Part shown: positions 2,809-63,493 of the stretch, one piece after another
Layout: every line of letters begins with the position of its first letter
Numbering within the stretch: position 1 is the stretch's first letter
Notes under the pieces: generated by a model
Told to the model about the DNA's origin: nothing
The model's database searches: none
Seen by the model: the letters and a program-made list of their open reading frames with translations, nothing else
Made by a program: the position numbers and the translations under genes
Assembly: GCA_965637545.1 (NCBI GenBank)
Contig: OZ281498.1
Coordinates: 434,001-498,000 of the forward strand
DNA from: Phallusia mammillata
Lineage: Eukaryota
Reading direction: 5' to 3'
DNA length: 64,000 nt

Positions 2809-11060
<8,252 letters not shown>

Positions 11061-11410: not shown

Positions 11411-13529
11411 ATGTCGGTGAGACAAAGCGAAGCTGAGCGAACAGTCACCGTTTGAATCTTGGCGGGAAGCCATTCTACCGGGAGTTAACCATTAACGAAC
11501 GGTTGCGTTTGGTGACGTGTCGGTCATATGATTGTTTGAATATCTGCACGTTTATGAAAAACTTGATGGCAACCATTTTATGTTGGCAACTTGAAGACTC
11601 CTGCATTGCCACAAAACATTTGGTTAGGGTCCAAAATTGCATCAAACCATTAATAGAATAAATCATTTAGCTTACTCAGCGGTGCTTTAATAATTAATTT
11701 CATATCGATTTACACACATATGCTTTGAAGTGGACTTTGTTTCACGGCCCAGAACACAAAATACCGGTTCACCAGGTTCTGGAATTACATCTGAATAAAA
11801 CAACGTTGCAAGTTTGGTTTGCGTCTGTGTAATGTGAGACGTTATAGTCTGGTTGTATTAACACAATAAAGCTATTTTCTTTCATTGTAGGTATAGTTTG
11901 CATGATAAACTTGAGCATAATGTCAGGGAAACAGGATTTCTAAAAAATTGCAATATACAAAGAGTTTGACATATTGGTAATATTTAGCACATATGTTAAT
12001 GTTATTCGGAGTTTTTTCCTAAATGATTAAAAGCCACCTGTTTTTTATTTTAGCTTTTGATTTATCTTTTTGCTATTCGTGTACATATTAGACTTCGAGG
12101 AAGTGTTCCTTTACATAAATCTGTTATCTATTTTTATGTAGTCCAACGCGAACTACGACTAGTTTTCAAGTTTAAAAATTTTGCAATTAGGTCAAATGTA
12201 CCATCACAATGTGTGTTCTGCACCCTTTCTTCCGGCGCTTAAACTATCCGGCAGGGTTTTTTGGTGGTTTCTTTTCCTGTCGAACCCCTACCTCTTTCCC
12301 TAACACGGGTGGTTAGATTAGATGCCAACTTGACCCTTTGTGTGTTGCTAAGCTGTGAACAGTTTTTGTGTTTGTTAAAAATGCAAGCTGTGACTATAAC
12401 TTAAATACTAAAATTAAACATGACCATATATTAATGACTGAATAGGAAGTGTGTTAGTCAGTGGTCATTGTTGTCCAACCCAACTACTCCGACTATCTTT
12501 TACATTTTTTAAAATCTTTATTATTTTTGTTTAGTGTATTTACAAGCACAACGTTTTGAACCTATATCGCGTGCGTTTTCGTGCCACATTACCAATGCGT
12601 GTTATTCAGTTTGGTTCGTCACTGTGTAACTGTAAGTGCATAAAATACACAAATGCTGTTTACACTCATATGCATTAATGAGTGGCGAAAACACGTCACA
12701 ATGGAGTTGCAAGTACAGAATTGCACTAAAACTACGAGCAGCATTAGAATTAGAATAACACTTCCTCAAAAACTATCAGGTAAACAAGAATTTGAATCAG
12801 AATTTTATTTACACCAACCAACTTTAGTTCATTTTAAATATGAACACCAAGATTTGTACGTTTTGCAGTATATACTTCGCCGACGTGACATTAAGCAACG
12901 AGTGCAAATTTACTCATGTCCATGTGGTGATGACGCGTGCCAACATTTTACTGAGTAGCAATGGTTTGTGCCAGCTGATTTCAATAATAAGGAGAAACCA
13001 GAGCGTTTTTTCCATAATGGCTGGATTTTAAGACTATTGAATGATAAAAAAAAAACTAAAAACAAGCAGTTCAAATTAGCACTTCAATTTTTATTGGCGC
13101 ACCATAAAAATCACCTCGAGTTGACACGCGTGCCAGGGGTTGCAGACACCTGGTGTAAACCTTTGTGTCTTTATACTACTTTGAGCTAAAAATCATTAAA
13201 AATCATTTGTTTCATACAAAAACTATCGAAACTACATTTCCCTATACTGTAAATCTAGAACCTAATGACTGAAGATACAAACTAAAAAAGAATACTAGTT
13301 TTCTTGATCTGGTGAACTGACAGACAAACTGTATTCTCTTTCACTACCAGACTATATATTATACCACAACACCAATGAGGTAGAGACTACGATTTAGTCT
13401 TGTTTGCAACTGTGTTTCTTGTTTGTAAGTACGAATTTAAAATATGTTTTAGTGATAAGGTTTGTTTTTGTGAGCTTTGGACATGAAGCGCATTCTCGTA
13501 TCACATGCCTCAAATGCAATTGGACACCT

Positions 13530-43748: not shown

Positions 43749-51953
<8,205 letters not shown>

Positions 51954-52355
51954 TTTCGAGCGGAAATCGGAAACCTACTCTGACGAATGCCTCAACTTTG
52001 TTTACTGTTTACGTTTTACTATCTTTCTTACTTGCATGAATAAAATATTACAATCAACACAATCTGTTGTGCGAATTAATATTCCAGGCAAAATACAGCA
52101 TATTGGCTAGGAGCAAACAGACAACTATCAGATACAGAGCAGAGTACATATGACTCGTAAAAAGTTAGTGTTAAGGCAACTAAGGTTATGTGCGAAAGAG
52201 GTACAAAACCCAAATACATGGAATTGCAAAAGGAGCACCAAATATGGTTGCTCATTTGATTGTGAACAGAGCAAACTTTTGTGTACATTACAAAAAAGGT
52301 ACATGAATAAATTTTAAATACATGTGCGGAGCTGTTGTTTGGCAACATTGTAACA

Positions 52356-55300
52356 TCAATTATCACTTTCAATGGAACGACTCCCTGAAGATGTTATCCT
52401 CTGTCGTATTGATTCATGTGATAGTTTTCTAACGAAAAGATGAAACACATTATGTCCACAAACAGAAATAGGCCCACCCTAACATCACTATAACTTGACT
52501 TCGAAAATAATACCTTCGTAGTTGAAACTAAATAGTTGATATTCTAATTGTATATTAAAGTTTAATGTACATTACATAGCAATCATTAAAACAACATGAC
52601 AATAAAATGTTTTAAATGGGAGCAGCTAATTGTTTTCGGTTCACACGTTTTCAACCAACTAAAAGCCACAACCAAGCAAAAAGTACTGAGAGTCATGATA
52701 TCTCAACTATATAATACATAGATGTTCAGGTGCAGAGTTCAAAGTCAAAGTTTGGCTACTTTGAAAAACACTTTACCTGTTTTTGTACAACTTCACTTCA
52801 TCATCACGAACAAGTGGAAGTAGAAGAAGATTTGTTTCCGGATCTTCCACACATCTTTTAATAAGTTCCAAATATGTCAAGTTCTCATTTGTATTGGGGT
52901 CCAAAAATCCCTTGGTGTCATCACTTGGGTCATCTAAAGTCTGGTGAAGCCGTTCATCAAATAAACCTTTGAATATCAACAAACACAGAAATCTAGAACA
53001 ATTCACCGAGACAAACCAGGAAAATACAAAAAAGACGTAACTAAGAATTGTAAATTTTGAAATATGCACAACATTAGCACTTAAAAATGTTTATGTGAAC
53101 ATGAGTAATTACTTGTGACACTTACCTCGCTCAAATGCAACCTCTACTGGCAATCGATGATTAGCAACCGGATCAATGATGCCTCCGGTGGCGATTTGTG
53201 CTTCCAGCAATCGAATTCCATGGTTCTCAACAATCAGCCCCTACACCAATATAAGCACAACAATAATTAAACGTATATAATTCCCAATAAGTAACATTTT
53301 GTCCTGCATCGATAAAAAAGTTAAATAGAAAAGACTCACTCTTTTCATTGCTTGAAACAAAGACAACTTTTCATCAGACCCACGTGGAGTGTAACCGGTA
53401 ACAGCTCGCTGAGCACGCACCAAAACTGCTGCAAATGCTCGATCGAGTAAGTTGTGTTCAAGTGCCTCCTCTACTGACATCTTATCGTCAGTTATCGGAT
53501 CAATAATACTCCCGACAGCTGCTTGAGCTTCAAGCAAGCTCAATGCGGTACCTGAAAACATCCAAGGCAAAATTAGGCAAAACAACAGTAAATAAGTTTA
53601 GTGGTTGACTGTGAAAAATACAACCATGATCAGATTTGTAAGCTATAGTTCTCAGAAATGTACAGTACATACAAAATGTAACAGTTAGCTCAGAAATAAA
53701 GAGACATATACAGACATGTACAGTGCATACAAAATGGTACAGTAAACATAGAAATGTACAGTTCTCTTAGAAATAAACAGTGTGTCGCAAACAGAATTGT
53801 ACTGTACACAGACATGTAATATATATACAAAAATGTACAGTATTTTCAAAAAGTAAAGTAAGCACAGAAATTCATACCTCTAGAAATAATTCGCTGTTTG
53901 TGTGCGTCAAATAAAGACATCTTTTGCCCAGTTTGGTCATTAAATATTCCTGCAATTGGATATTGGCCAATCAGGAAAGGTCTCAGCTCTCTTTCCACCT
54001 CTTCCTCAGTAATCTAAACAAATTTAACATTTGCCATTACAACAAATAAAACTAAAAAAATGACGCAATAGGTAAACTTTGGAACACTATATAACGATCT
54101 GTTCATAAGTTTATAGTATAAGGCCCAAATAGTACCGGCCCAAATAAACAGCATTTACCAAAACGTTTAAACTTTAATATACAAGTAATCTCCAATGTTT
54201 AAACACACCCAATGTTAAAGCTTCCAGTGTTTAAAACACAAACTTACCACTTGTTCTTCGAGTTCAACAACTCTTGATTCTTCTATGACTTTTGCACGAA
54301 TCAAGTCCTGCAGTTTCACAGTCTTCCTCCATCCCGATTTAAACACAATATCATCACGAGATTTCCTTCTCTCTAGGGTTCGAGGGGGAGCACTTTTCTG
54401 CACATTTGCGTTCACTAGAGGGGGTACTAGATCCTCCACACCCTCTTCTTTGATAGCATCAGCTTTTCAAAAACATACATATTTTTTTTACTTTTCAGGC
54501 ATTAGATAGACTTAAAAAATAAAGCTCTAATTATCAAAATGTTTTGAAAAAAATGCAAGATTTGTGATTTACTGCTGTTTAAAAGCTTTAAATCTGTTGG
54601 TCTAAAATAAATTTAAAACACTTGAAATTAGTGCTAAAAGCTTTTTATTGTTACCAGACATCAATGTATTCATATAAAGGTCCATTCAGTAATCAAAGCT
54701 GAAAACCACTGGTATAAAGATATTAATTGAACAAAAATAGTCACAGAACAAACCATTCGATGTTTTGGAATCAGTTTCGGTCCCAATTTTTCCATCATTC
54801 TCTGTCAGTTTTCCCTCTGCTTCAATAAGCACATCATATTCCTGTCAATAAAAGCAAAATTGATAGGAACTGAGCACCACTAAATGATTATTTCATTACG
54901 GGGAGAAACAATATAGAAATATGCAAAGAATTACAGAGTTGTAATTACAAGTACTTAAAACAAAAAGATACATTGTGATCACTTGAATGGTTTGTGGCTT
55001 TAGCATTAAATTCAAAATAATGCACTATGATCACTTGTACAGTGTGAAGTACTCCAAACACCCCAACTTAAAAACAGGAAATTTACACACCTTTTTAATC
55101 AACACAACCACATCTTCCGTTTGGGTGCTTGTATCTTTATGTTGCTTGGATTCTGGAAAAATATTTCGTTAAACCTTGATTGAATTACAATCCACCCACA
55201 GCAACATGTCTAACCTTGAGTGGCTTCAGTTTCATGTGCAACATTGTCATATCCGATAATCTTCCTTTCAACATCCTTTGTTGTACCTAAAAATATATAT

Positions 55301-57465
55301 TTCATTTATAAAAAATAAGCAAATACATTAAACCAAAACACAAAAATACAAATGCGTATATACGTTAAATATCTTTGTTAAATATATAAAAGTTTTTAGC
55401 CACAAAACTAAAGCAAAAACAGAGCTTGGATTTGCACTAACTAATAAAAACACAAATTCGATTATCCCTACTTTGTTTTGAGCCGAATTATTACTCAAGA
55501 CTGGGTAAAATTACCAATACTTTTAAGTAAGCACTAAAAACTTCAATTTTTATTTGCATTTAGTACTTTGCAGGCTGCAGGCAACCGTGTTTGCAGCAAA
55601 CAAAGTCAACAATCAAGAAACCTTTATCTGTTACATTTGCTCAATGAAGTGTGACCAAATGCGATCTAGCGTTACGCGCGCAAAAATCACTAGAGCGAAA
55701 CAAGTAAGTACAACAAGAGCTTTGGAAACTCTTCAATAAAAGGAAACAATTTTGACAGACAAAATCTTGAAAGAATTTCTTACGATGTTTCCACAAAAAT
55801 CGAAGCAGCAATAGAACAGCAAGCAAATCCACCAAAGCGATAAAGGCGATTAAATCGAGGAAGAACTCCAAATATCCGGGGCCATAATTAAAATTCAACA
55901 AATATGTCATGTTGCTTATGAAAACTGCAATTGAGATATCAAGAAGCATGTCACTTGCACTAAAAATCCAGGTGTCACTAAACAACTGCCTTGCCACATG
56001 TAGTACGCTATCAAAACTTGGAACTAACGACATTAAACAATGCAAATTCATCTCTGGTGGCTGATACACTGGCAAACTACCACTAAGTTCGTCATACCAA
56101 CAAGGCGCTGTTTCGAACATAAATGCGTCTTCATAATTCCCATGGGTGTTCGCGCAGTCGTGCTGCGGTCAATCAACGCTAATATTCCAGAATGCCTGAC
56201 AACAACATCTAACAAATATATTGGCTTGAAACCCGGCCTATTCGACTTAATCCAATTCACACCACAACTTAAGTTTTGGGGCCTGTTCATTTTCGCCGCA
56301 AACCACAGGCAGCCAGTGTTCCCTCATGTGTTTACGTAATAGGCCGATTCGGCGAATCGTCACGCAAAAACGCAGATCGAACCTTGAGACCAAACCAAGC
56401 GGAAAATGGTCGGCCTGCGCCTGACAGGTTGGGGTTTACCGCAGTTCATACAATACTAGTGTAACGCGAAAACTCCATTCAAATTTCTACTCGCCGACTG
56501 AGCCATTTTTAGGAGTTCTTCGCCTATTCACAATGACAATGGGTCAACATTTGCTTGTTCACGGACAAAAGAATCTAGAATGACTTTGTTCACCAAATAT
56601 CTCGCAATGTTTGGCGCAATTCACGCATGACAGGCACCAGTAATTTTAAGCCTATAAGTGTTTACCTCTTGTAAAGTAGAAAGAGCAAGGAATTATCCAA
56701 ACTCAGAGCATTTGAGAACTAGTAATGAGGCCGTTAGTCAGATGTTTCATATTTACCAGCACAATAACAGTATGTTTCTGTATTATAAGCGATGGTCCAA
56801 CGCTTTGTATTCACCTTTAACCCAGTGAATTTGTGCCGCGAAATGTAAGAGACCAATAAACGTCTCATGTTCTAAAGCTTGACGACAAAATATGAGTGTA
56901 TATGACAACTCTAAATCTTTATTTTTACATTATTTGTTCCAAAAGCAGTTTGTAACAATACAGAAAAATTGAAAAAGTATTTCTTTAGCCTAATATTTTT
57001 GTGATTTTAAACCATGAAGTGTGTTTCGAACAATAGTTTAGTTTGTTCGTGGTCATATACTTTGTAACTGACCCGGCTATTTCGGGTCTAACGTTTACAC
57101 TAGCTGAGAGAAATTTGCCCTACAGCAGTTAGGTTTATCACAGTGAAAACACGGTTTATTGCGGTACTCGGAATTCCTGTGTAAATATTGCCAACGGCGA
57201 TCACAATAAAAATTCGACAAAACACGAACTAATGCAAAGCAGAAATACTAAACTTACCTTTATTTGTTCGCCAGTAACGGCGAGCAGCTAGAAAGATTGC
57301 AACCAACGTGAGGAACACTGCCATAGCCACCATTGCGCCGCCGACGATGTACGGTGTAACTGGTTGATTAGAAGTAAGTTGGCCGCGAACTTGTAAAACA
57401 CAGCTCAACACCGCCACACAGCGGTAATAACCAAAAAACTTTTTGTTCGCGAAAAATAAATCCAT
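52356..57465 (-). CDS. Plakin-repeat-domain (desmoplakin/plectin PRD-B-like) protein, predicted single-pass membrane protein of ~456 aa, 10 exons
   Basis: Exons 57465-57258, 55286-55215, 55152-55091, 54841-54754, 54462-54248, 54013-53878, 53551-53340, 53240-53126, 52966-52777 and 52428-52356 are all phase-compatible (1371 nt). Plectin-repeat signatures: [52 protein letters not shown]. The PRD exons are high confidence; linkage of the TM exon over a ~2-kb intron is inferred. Confidence 0.75.
53630..53870. repeat. Degenerate ~19-20-bp minisatellite in an intron
   Basis: Recurrent agaaatgtacagtacatac-like units. Confidence 0.6.
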
Positions 57466-58245
57466 TCTTATACGATTGTTCTACCAAAGCACTATTTTAA
57501 AGTTTGTGTCTAAATGCGTAAAAATTAGAGAAAACAACAACAGGACAACAAAGATTTACGTTTCGCGCCTTTTCGACAGATGTTGTGTTATTATTATTAA
57601 AGTGAGCGTATAGACGAGGCTGTATTTAACGAAGACGCAAATTTTACTGGGTTTTGCTTTAAAATTGCATTTATATCAATTCACTACAGTTTTTGTTTTT
57701 GTTTGCCTTAATAAGGTAACGGCGAAAACGTCAAAAATTTCTCACAAATTGCACAAACACGTTGTAATTCCAACAGCGCACTTCACTATGTTTATTTAAC
57801 AATCAGTTTATCTAACAGGCCAACAAGCTGACAAACCTCACCCACTGACCACATAAAATCGAGTCATCCAACTAAACCCACCCTAAACCCGATTAGCTGC
57901 TTCCCTCCACTCATGCGTGTCCAAGAATGTCACCCATTGTTTGAAGGCGCAGTGATGTGACGTCACAAGTGTTTTTCTGCAAGACTTGTTAGCTTTGGTA
58001 ACGCCCACTATTTCCGCCTGACCAAAAAAAATTAACTAAATGCAAAGCGTTACGATATGTTGAATAAAGTTTGTTGGAAAACAATTTACATGACTTTGCA
58101 CCGTAGATGTGCAATGCGTAATGTTACGGATTAAAAACACAAATTTCACCATGAATTTTTTTTATTTCCATTCAAAAACATTTTAAATCCCATAAACCTC
58201 AGCCACAACAAATTAACAATTACATATTCCGGTTTCATCTGCAGC

Positions 58246-63493
<5,248 letters not shown>

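Follow-up and report, generated by a model that had tools for sequence, protein, structure and literature searches.

Plakin-repeat domains (PRDs) terminate giant cytolinkers in vertebrates, and adaptors bring them to membranes; a locus of the tunicate Phallusia mammillata raises the question whether such a domain may also be carried by a small protein with a membrane anchor of its own. Here we report the analysis of this locus, which occupies positions 52356-57465 on the minus strand of a 64,000-nucleotide stretch of DNA (contig OZ281498.1, positions 434,001 to 498,000; assembly GCA_965637545.1), hereafter called the window. A first-pass annotation of the letters had described a transmembrane (TM) helix joined to a single PRD in a protein of ~456 amino acids (aa), without plakin domain or rod, and this architecture is supported by spliced RNA contigs, by the identity of exons 2-10 to a public protein, by orthologues and by a predicted PRD-C fold. 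The locus is probably one ten-exon gene for a single-pass membrane protein that consists of an anchor, a linker, one PRD of the desmoplakin PRD-C type and a short tail, and that would serve as a filament tether.

Gene model and transcript support

The gene (57465-52356, minus strand) comprises ten exons, here E1 to E10, the first of which has two alternative forms, E1a and E1b. All introns have canonical GT..AG ends, and the phases are compatible throughout. The coding sequence of the E1a isoform sums to 1368 nt (456 codons), with the stop codon TGA at 52358-52356; E2, which begins at 55286 after TTTTAG, requires phase 1. A public P. mammillata protein of 429 aa (UniProt A0A6F9DAT3, here P0066, labelled "Desmoplakin-like") equals E1b plus E2-E10 with zero mismatches.

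Transcript-like contigs of four public runs (X1, X3, X5 and X9) from three studies were compared with the window over 52300-58299. The contigs, taken from Logan, carried ~20% of the words of this 6-kb stretch, which is the share of the exons. In each of X1, X3 and X5 (two studies), all ten exons are united through nine junctions in one contig of 1.3-1.5 kb, and X9, from the third study, contributes five junctions (E4-E5 through E8-E9). The splice from 57258 to 55286, a junction that the first-pass annotation had singled out for checking, was confirmed in X1, X3 and X5 (joint 55283->57255; plus-strand ends CT..AC, cut +3). No contig of the four runs has a joint that leaves the region for other exons; since all joints are local, the PRD exons do not stem from a distant plakin gene. 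An additional contig of X3 (depth 63) matches only 52894-52923 and 53188-53210, with 255 nt of unmatched ends; it most likely represents a more highly expressed paralogous PRD gene, not an alternative splice form of the gene described here. The exons, with the evidence for each, are as follows.

57258..57465, minus strand: exon 1a, alternative first coding exon (sequence; RNA contigs with cover on 57255-57349 and a join to 55286)
55784..55910, minus strand: exon 1b, the other first coding exon, in intron 1 and mutually exclusive with exon 1a (sequence; identity to P0066 residues 1-42)
55215..55286, minus strand: exon 2, first exon common to both isoforms, with juxtamembrane GYDNV (joints 55283->57255 and 55152->55215; P0066 44-66)
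55091..55152, minus strand: exon 3, part of the linker (RNA joints; P0066 68-87)
54754..54841, minus strand: exon 4, acidic linker, predicted to be disordered (RNA joints; P0066 88-116; pLDDT <50)
54248..54462, minus strand: exon 5, end of the linker, conserved motif and start of the PRD (RNA joints; P0066 118-188; motif kept in 15 orthologues)
53878..54013, minus strand: exon 6, plakin repeat 1 (Pfam Plectin, E=0.0026; RNA joints)
53340..53551, minus strand: exon 7, plakin repeats 2-3 with R279 and R282 (Pfam Plectin, 1.2e-16; RNA joints; PDB alignment; conservation)
53126..53240, minus strand: exon 8, plakin repeat 4 with the invariant R333 (Pfam Plectin, 2.5e-14; RNA joints; PDB alignment; conservation)
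52777..52966, minus strand: exon 9, end of the PRD (half repeat 5) and start of the tail (joints 52964->53124 and 52428->52777; P0066 344-406)
52356..52428, minus strand: exon 10, Ser/Arg-rich tail, TGA and start of the 3' untranslated region (UTR) (RNA joint; P0066 407-429)

Two alternative anchor exons

Exon 1a starts with the ATG at 57465 and encodes, in this order, signal-like residues 1-28, ~11 uncharged residues, a putative TM helix (residues 40-61; Kyte-Doolittle 19-residue maximum 2.55) and the basic stretch RRYWRTNK, before it ends in phase 1 with the donor AAA G/GTAAGT. The signal-like stretch, short ectodomain, TM segment, RRYWR and GTAAGT donor in the needed phase all lie where the first-pass annotation had placed them. 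It had assumed a single TM first exon; E1a holds, but a second anchor exon, E1b (55910-55784), had been overlooked. E1b lies within the E1a-E2 intron, with its ATG at 55910 and a phase 1 donor, CAT C/GTAAGA. The 42 residues that it encodes are 100% identical to residues 1-42 of P0066 and appear to form a TM segment of the N-terminal signal-anchor type (hydropathy maximum 2.78) with a conserved YGPG-L motif and the basic RFLWKHR after the helix. The gene thus has two mutually exclusive anchor first exons, E1a and E1b, either of which is joined to E2.

An exhaustive HMMER search of 1.84 billion representative proteins yielded no orthologue of E1a, and its sole match, P0001, is a repeat protein and was discarded as spurious; E1a is short or divergent beyond the reach of sequence search. 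A second match in the P. mammillata genome (G000:C6:24532931, E=0.06) was rejected because its hydrophobicity is too low for a TM helix. Identity of E1a with MAP17 (PDZK1IP1, PF15807) was likewise rejected: the match scored 23.3 bits against a Pfam gathering cut-off of 29.6 (E=7e-5), Pfam found no MAP17 match in the E1a-type N-termini of Ciona, Clavelina and other species, and the orthologous exons gave equally weak matches to DAP10, CD34 and similar families. The match appears to be generic TM similarity.

Orthologues, synteny and phylogeny

A search with the PRD of L003, a paralogue in the P. mammillata genome, retrieved many tunicate proteins of 400-520 aa labelled "desmoplakin-like". Among them are orthologues of 430-520 aa with an N-terminal TM segment from Ciona, Clavelina, Styela and further ascidian-like transcriptomes. 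In Ciona intestinalis, for which the exon layout was deduced from two RefSeq isoforms only, isoform X1 (XP_002129905, P0122, 451 aa) carries RRLK after a signal peptide, a short ectodomain and a TM helix, as in the E1a type, and isoform X2 (XP_018670703, P0069, 436 aa) begins with MYMDMSYFWSATYGPGFLGFFVDL, as in the E1b type; from SNGNLSTSS onward the two isoforms do not differ. Such anchor pairs also occur in two further transcriptomes (P0076/P0126 versus P0127, and P0079/P0130 versus P0129). The E1b type is thereby kept in Ciona X2, Clavelina and two further transcriptomes, with an invariant G-x-G-x-L inside YGPG[YF]L. In one related species, a first exon that encodes a coiled coil and no TM segment (P0124, P0125) alternates with one of the E1a type (P0075, P0123), which suggests a soluble isoform of the PRD protein there.

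The Clavelina lepadiformis orthologue (P0070, LOC143449392, locus L015) has E1b at 12800-13009 and an E1a-type open reading frame (ORF) at 9878-10084. The latter encodes MTMDNYIRTLALIILLCRAEA, followed by LQIECDQPITPV, VVISIVCTMAVMLVILSIYLLY and NRCKSKG, and ends in the donor AAA G/GTGAGA in phase 1, as in Phallusia; E1a aligns with this exon and with Ciona X1, signal part included. The PRD exon boundaries are alike in both species (45, 70, 39 and 63 aa). In Clavelina the gene is immediately preceded on its strand by two chitinase genes (GH18+CBM_14), and a chitinase gene lies upstream in the window too.

In a maximum-likelihood tree of PRDs, the orthogroup of 11 sequences (Phallusia, two Ciona species, Clavelina, Styela and six further sequences) forms one clade with an SH-aLRT support of 98. 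Most tunicate PRDs fall into one group (support 94), and those of vertebrates into another (support 89). The PRD clade, the intron positions and the synteny together indicate that the Phallusia, Ciona, Styela and Clavelina genes are orthologous, and the TM-PRD design is conserved across ascidian orders, with the anchor pair present in Phallusia, Ciona, Clavelina and two further transcriptomes; orthologues in other tunicates were among the checks that the first-pass annotation had proposed.

At least three further sub-clades of tunicate PRDs (P0108/P0112, P0040 and P0053/P0155) also contain TM-bearing proteins, and no such protein was seen among the vertebrate matches inspected. Most matches of a profile search with an alignment of 15 orthologues were vertebrate fragments with several PRDs. 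A Ciona paralogue with a TM segment (P0155) was the one addition, and no TM-PRD protein from outside the tunicates was found, a result that does not prove absence elsewhere. When the P. mammillata genome was searched with P0112 and P0155, PRD exons were matched and the TM exons of these proteins were not found. Dense PRD matches at G000:C2:25147434-25192563 at first resembled a giant plakin; the stretch contains three long single ORFs of 390-465 aa (L004, L001 and L003), and L001 and L003 end soon after a PRD, which fits a cluster of separate small PRD genes.

Plakin-repeat domain, linker and tail

The exons were searched singly, and P0066, the E1b isoform, served as the full-length stand-in for searches and fold prediction. 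Pfam Plectin (PF00681) was detected with 60.7 bits in E7 and 53.2 bits in E8 (cut-off 20.5) and with 149.9 bits in P0066 as a whole. Residues 160-396 of P0066 align to desmoplakin PRD-C (PDB 1LM7) with 245 bits, and also to 5DZZ, envoplakin 4QMD and plectin 2N03.

An AlphaFold2 model of P0066, built on the 15-orthologue alignment, shows a helix at 13-50 (pLDDT 74-89), a disordered linker of ~100 residues at 47-146 (pLDDT <50), and the PRD with the tail at 150-421 (pLDDT 81-95). Foldseek placed the model closest to 1lm7_A (TM-score 0.95, rmsd 1.3 Å, 51% identity), with TM-scores of 0.89 for 4qmd_A and 0.90 for 1lm5_A. The C-terminal 270 residues are predicted to fold as desmoplakin PRD-C, that is, as a globular PRD of 4.5 repeats. 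In P0066 and its orthologues, Plectin repeats are the only Pfam domains detected, and there is no plakin domain, SH3 domain, actin-binding domain or rod; the P0066 model has no long helix beyond the TM helix that could form a coiled-coil or spectrin-repeat rod, and the total length is 429-456 aa.

In envoplakin, six basic residues of the PRD groove have been probed for vimentin binding, and substitutions at five of them (not R1876) compromise it (PMC4782060). Four of the six positions are basic here (K257, R282, K295 and R333), as listed below for the 15 orthologues.

Envoplakin R1876: K257, varies
Envoplakin R1895: V276, invariant, not basic
Envoplakin K1901: R282, invariant
Envoplakin R1914: K295, varies
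Envoplakin R1952: R333, invariant
Envoplakin K1994: L375, not basic

R279, three residues past the R1895 column, is invariant in the 15 orthologues as well. The groove appears partly kept and is compatible with filament binding, and candidate ligands are available, as the P. mammillata genome contains at least six intermediate-filament gene loci. R416 and S422 of the tail are invariant in the orthologues, and an RRKS site just before the PRD is conserved.

A short motif, G-Y-[DES]-N-[VP], follows both anchors in Phallusia (exon 2, 55216-55284), Ciona, Clavelina and Styela; its Tyr is missing in a further transcriptome group of orthologues. The motif matches a YxxPhi sorting signal and a pYxN SH2-binding motif, and either role would fit.

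Genomic neighbourhood

The upstream gene on the minus strand is a GH18+CBM_14 chitinase (window 58246-63424), with GH18 exons within 61255-62302 (e.g. 61255-61392 and 62126-62302), a DWEYPG-motif ORF at 63227-63424, a Thr/Pro-rich linker and CBM_14 exon(s) at 58246-58431. Its 3' end is represented by a separate RNA contig (58166-58299) that stops at ~58165, ~700 bp before the ATG of E1a. The first-pass annotation had argued that there is no room for a plakin or rod region between this gene and the PRD exons, and both the transcript, which lacks further exons, and the chitinase end agree with it.

The same annotation had placed regulatory and untranslated elements in this interval, with mixed outcome. 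An acceptor-like AG does precede the ATG of E1a, but at a distance of 15 nt and not 16 nt. A 5'-UTR exon with a donor at ~57841 was not confirmed, as none of the four runs gives RNA depth on 57500-58099. The CRE (TGACGTCA), a perfect palindrome, is indeed present at 57958-57965, ~490 bp upstream of the E1a ATG and between the chitinase 3' end and E1a, but its proposed role found no confirmation in this uncovered interval.

On the other side, the plus-strand exons of a myosin heavy-chain coiled-coil rod (49948-51903) run towards the PRD gene in a tail-to-tail arrangement. The RNA contig with the 3' UTR of the PRD gene extends past 52300 to ~52069, so that the 3' ends of the two genes are very close.

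Elsewhere in the genome, PRD exons at C5:15404159-15417156 are followed ~52 kb downstream on the same strand by a GAS2 domain (C5:15468828-15469082). This locus (C5:15.40-15.47 Mb) probably represents the conventional spectraplakin of P. mammillata; it is 15 Mb away from the window.

Proposed function and alternative explanations

In the explanation that we favour, the E1a isoform (456 aa) would have a type-I layout of signal peptide, ~11-residue ectodomain, TM helix and basic cluster, and the E1b isoform (429 aa) would be held by an N-terminal signal-anchor helix with YGPG-L followed by basic residues; each first exon is presumably under its own promoter. In both isoforms the basic residues lie C-terminal of the helix, and by the positive-inside rule the PRD should therefore face the cytoplasm. 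The cytoplasmic part would comprise the disordered acidic linker of ~100 residues, one PRD of the desmoplakin PRD-C type and the short Ser/Arg tail. By homology, the PRD groove would clamp acidic surfaces of intermediate-filament rods as the PRDs of desmoplakin and envoplakin do, and the protein would pin filaments directly to the membrane of its anchor without plakin domain, rod or adaptor. Filament binding by desmoplakin is regulated through phosphorylation of its tail, and the Ser/Arg tail and the RRKS site may act likewise here. We infer a role as membrane-to-filament anchor.

Several observations count against this explanation. The TM and signal calls rest on hydropathy and charge rules. 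No RNA depth was found on 57350-58099 in the four runs, which leaves the first 116 nt of E1a uncovered, and these runs give no RNA support for the signal-peptide part of E1a with its ATG (57465) and initial 38 codons. E1b has no RNA depth in any of the four, and the public record P0066 is the sole source for its use in P. mammillata. Since E1a has no detectable homologue in the protein library, its link to the E1a-type exons of other species rests on position, phase, architecture and ~25% identity. Finally, the basic residue is not kept at the R1895 and K1994 positions (V276 and L375); with these two non-basic and K257 and K295 variable, the binding mode could differ from that of envoplakin.

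The uncovered part of E1a leads to the question of where translation begins. The contigs of X1, X3 and X5 (two studies) stop at 57349, 57346 and 57346, in the first codons of the TM helix, with no unmatched letters and no AG acceptor before the end and with no depth upstream. Their shared stop could stem from a start of transcription or translation within the exon, or from polymorphism that broke the assembly graph. If transcription started inside E1a, translation from codon 45 (ATG 57333, GCAATGG) would give ~412 aa with an uncleaved N-terminal signal anchor before RRYWR and with neither signal peptide nor ectodomain, and this product could exist alone or beside the longer form. The Clavelina gene range also opens at a Met inside the equivalent helix (L015:10001), as do Styela P0067 and Logan P0074 inside theirs. 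We nevertheless consider this start unlikely, if by no means negligible: 5'-truncated assemblies are common, full signal peptides are present in the transcript-derived P0076, P0079, P0075 and P0080, and the 38 upstream codons are open, signal-peptide-like and alignable with the signal peptides of Ciona X1 and Clavelina. The E1a-type exons of Phallusia, Ciona and Clavelina have two motifs in common, RC[VL]A[VL] within the signal region and QP[VI]TP ahead of the helix, and these argue that the part of E1a without RNA cover is coding.

A second alternative keeps the membrane anchor and takes the PRD to bind no intermediate filaments, the protein being, for example, a scaffold for other acidic coiled-coil proteins or a signalling adaptor (juxtamembrane Y-x-N, and RRKS or Ser-rich tail sites). 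The loss of two of the six envoplakin groove basics, the variability of two more among the orthologues, the separate radiation of the tunicate PRDs from those of vertebrates and the GY[DES]N[VP] motif after the anchor in Phallusia, Ciona, Clavelina and Styela would all suit it. It seems rather improbable, however, given the 51% identity to desmoplakin PRD-C over the whole length at an rmsd of 1.3 Å, the invariance of R282 (the critical K1901 column) and R333 (the R1952 column), and the existence of intermediate-filament genes in the P. mammillata genome; moreover, all PRDs characterised so far bind intermediate filaments (PMC4782060).

That the hydrophobic N-terminus is only a secretion signal, and the PRD secreted or lumenal, is very improbable: E1a does open with a signal-peptide-like stretch, but its second hydrophobic segment of 22 residues with four basic residues after it has the signature of a stop-transfer sequence, and E1b has no cleavage-type c-region and carries basic residues after its helix. 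To our knowledge, all PRDs of known location are cytoplasmic. Close to inconceivable is an origin of the PRD exons from a large conventional plakin, which the first-pass annotation had named as its refutation, or an assembly chimera of a MAP17-like gene and a plakin fragment: the sub-threshold Pfam MAP17 match on E1a is reproduced in no orthologue, the TM-PRD join occurs in independent runs of two studies, no further exon is joined before the chitinase transcript ends at ~58165, public Ciona, Clavelina, Styela and Phallusia proteins have an equally short architecture, and the sole PRD+GAS2 spectraplakin-like locus on the contig is 15 Mb away.

Returning to the membrane-anchored filament tether, the choice of first exon may select its membrane or partner, as the analogy with plectin 1b and dystonin-a2 suggests. 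A wider reading, which we offer tentatively as a possibility, is that the two anchors send one minimal module to different membranes or complexes and that, together with its tunicate paralogues, the gene forms a lineage-specific, adaptor-free attachment of filaments to membranes. E1a would then lead to the secretory pathway and the plasma membrane, and E1b, moderately hydrophobic and with acidic residues, to an organelle or a partner subunit. If so, filament-membrane attachment in tunicates would differ from the vertebrate adaptor route via desmoplakin or plectin.

Comparison with known systems

Desmoplakin PRD-C (1LM7, 5DZZ) is the closest structural counterpart: as in the gene described here, the full PRD consists of a pre-repeat extension and 4.5 plakin repeats, several groove basics are present, and a short Ser/Arg-rich tail follows the domain. 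In contrast to the 429-456 aa found here, desmoplakin has ~2,870 aa with a plakin domain, SH3, coiled-coil rod, PRD-A and PRD-B, none of which occurs in the ascidian protein; it is recruited via plakoglobin, plakophilin and cadherins, whereas the latter has a TM anchor of its own; and its PRD is encoded by one giant 3' exon, whereas the PRD here is distributed over five exons.

Membrane anchors encoded by alternative first exons are known from two giant cytolinkers, so that the earlier statement that PRD proteins reach membranes only indirectly was incomplete. In plectin 1b an alternative first exon encodes an outer-mitochondrial-membrane signal anchor, and the choice of exon sets the location (PMC2426950); in dystonin-a2 (dystonin/BPAG1 isoform 2) an alternative 5' exon provides an N-terminal TM segment that directs the protein to the endoplasmic reticulum (ER) and perinuclear membranes (PMC3279385). 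E1a and E1b are built alike, each being an alternative first coding exon with an N-terminal hydrophobic anchor spliced onto common exons. As proposed here, the first-exon TM segment of plectin 1b puts a PRD-bearing filament linker into a membrane. Plectin 1b, however, exceeds 4,000 aa and contains six PRDs besides an actin-binding domain, a plakin domain and a rod, compared with an anchor, ~100 disordered residues and one PRD here; the anchors have no detectable sequence similarity, and in the ascidian gene both first exons encode anchors. Dystonin, a giant spectraplakin whose neuronal a-isoforms act mainly on microtubules and actin, is not a minimal TM-PRD protein either. MAP17-like proteins have only their layout in common with E1a (signal peptide, ~10-residue ectodomain, TM helix and juxtamembrane aromatic/basic residue).

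Similar in design are other tunicate TM-PRD proteins (Ciona "plectin-like X2" P0155, Styela P0108, Clavelina P0112 and P0040), which also have an N-terminal TM segment, a low-complexity linker and one or more PRDs. They belong to other PRD sub-clades, and those inspected differ by a single anchor, a linker of another length, additional PDZ-like regions or more than one PRD; as far as seen among these sequences, the paired alternative anchor exons are specific to the orthogroup described here.

A literature search found no paper that describes the TM-PRD architecture. In Ciona, a plectin/desmoplakin/epiplakin homologue of unstated architecture, possibly a different gene, has been reported as enriched in papilla cells (PMC7397655). 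The labels "desmoplakin-like" and "plectin-like" hide the TM-PRD architecture and are corrected here. If the PRD binds ascidian intermediate filaments, the protein would be the simplest natural membrane-to-filament tether known; at ~430 aa it could be manipulated by electroporation in Ciona or Phallusia embryos, and might be used to study how filament attachment shapes cells, how first exons direct cytolinkers and how such anchorage evolved in chordates. Compared with the systems above, what differs is the minimal architecture, its two anchors and its tunicate-wide conservation, in proteins that were already present in databases under generic names.

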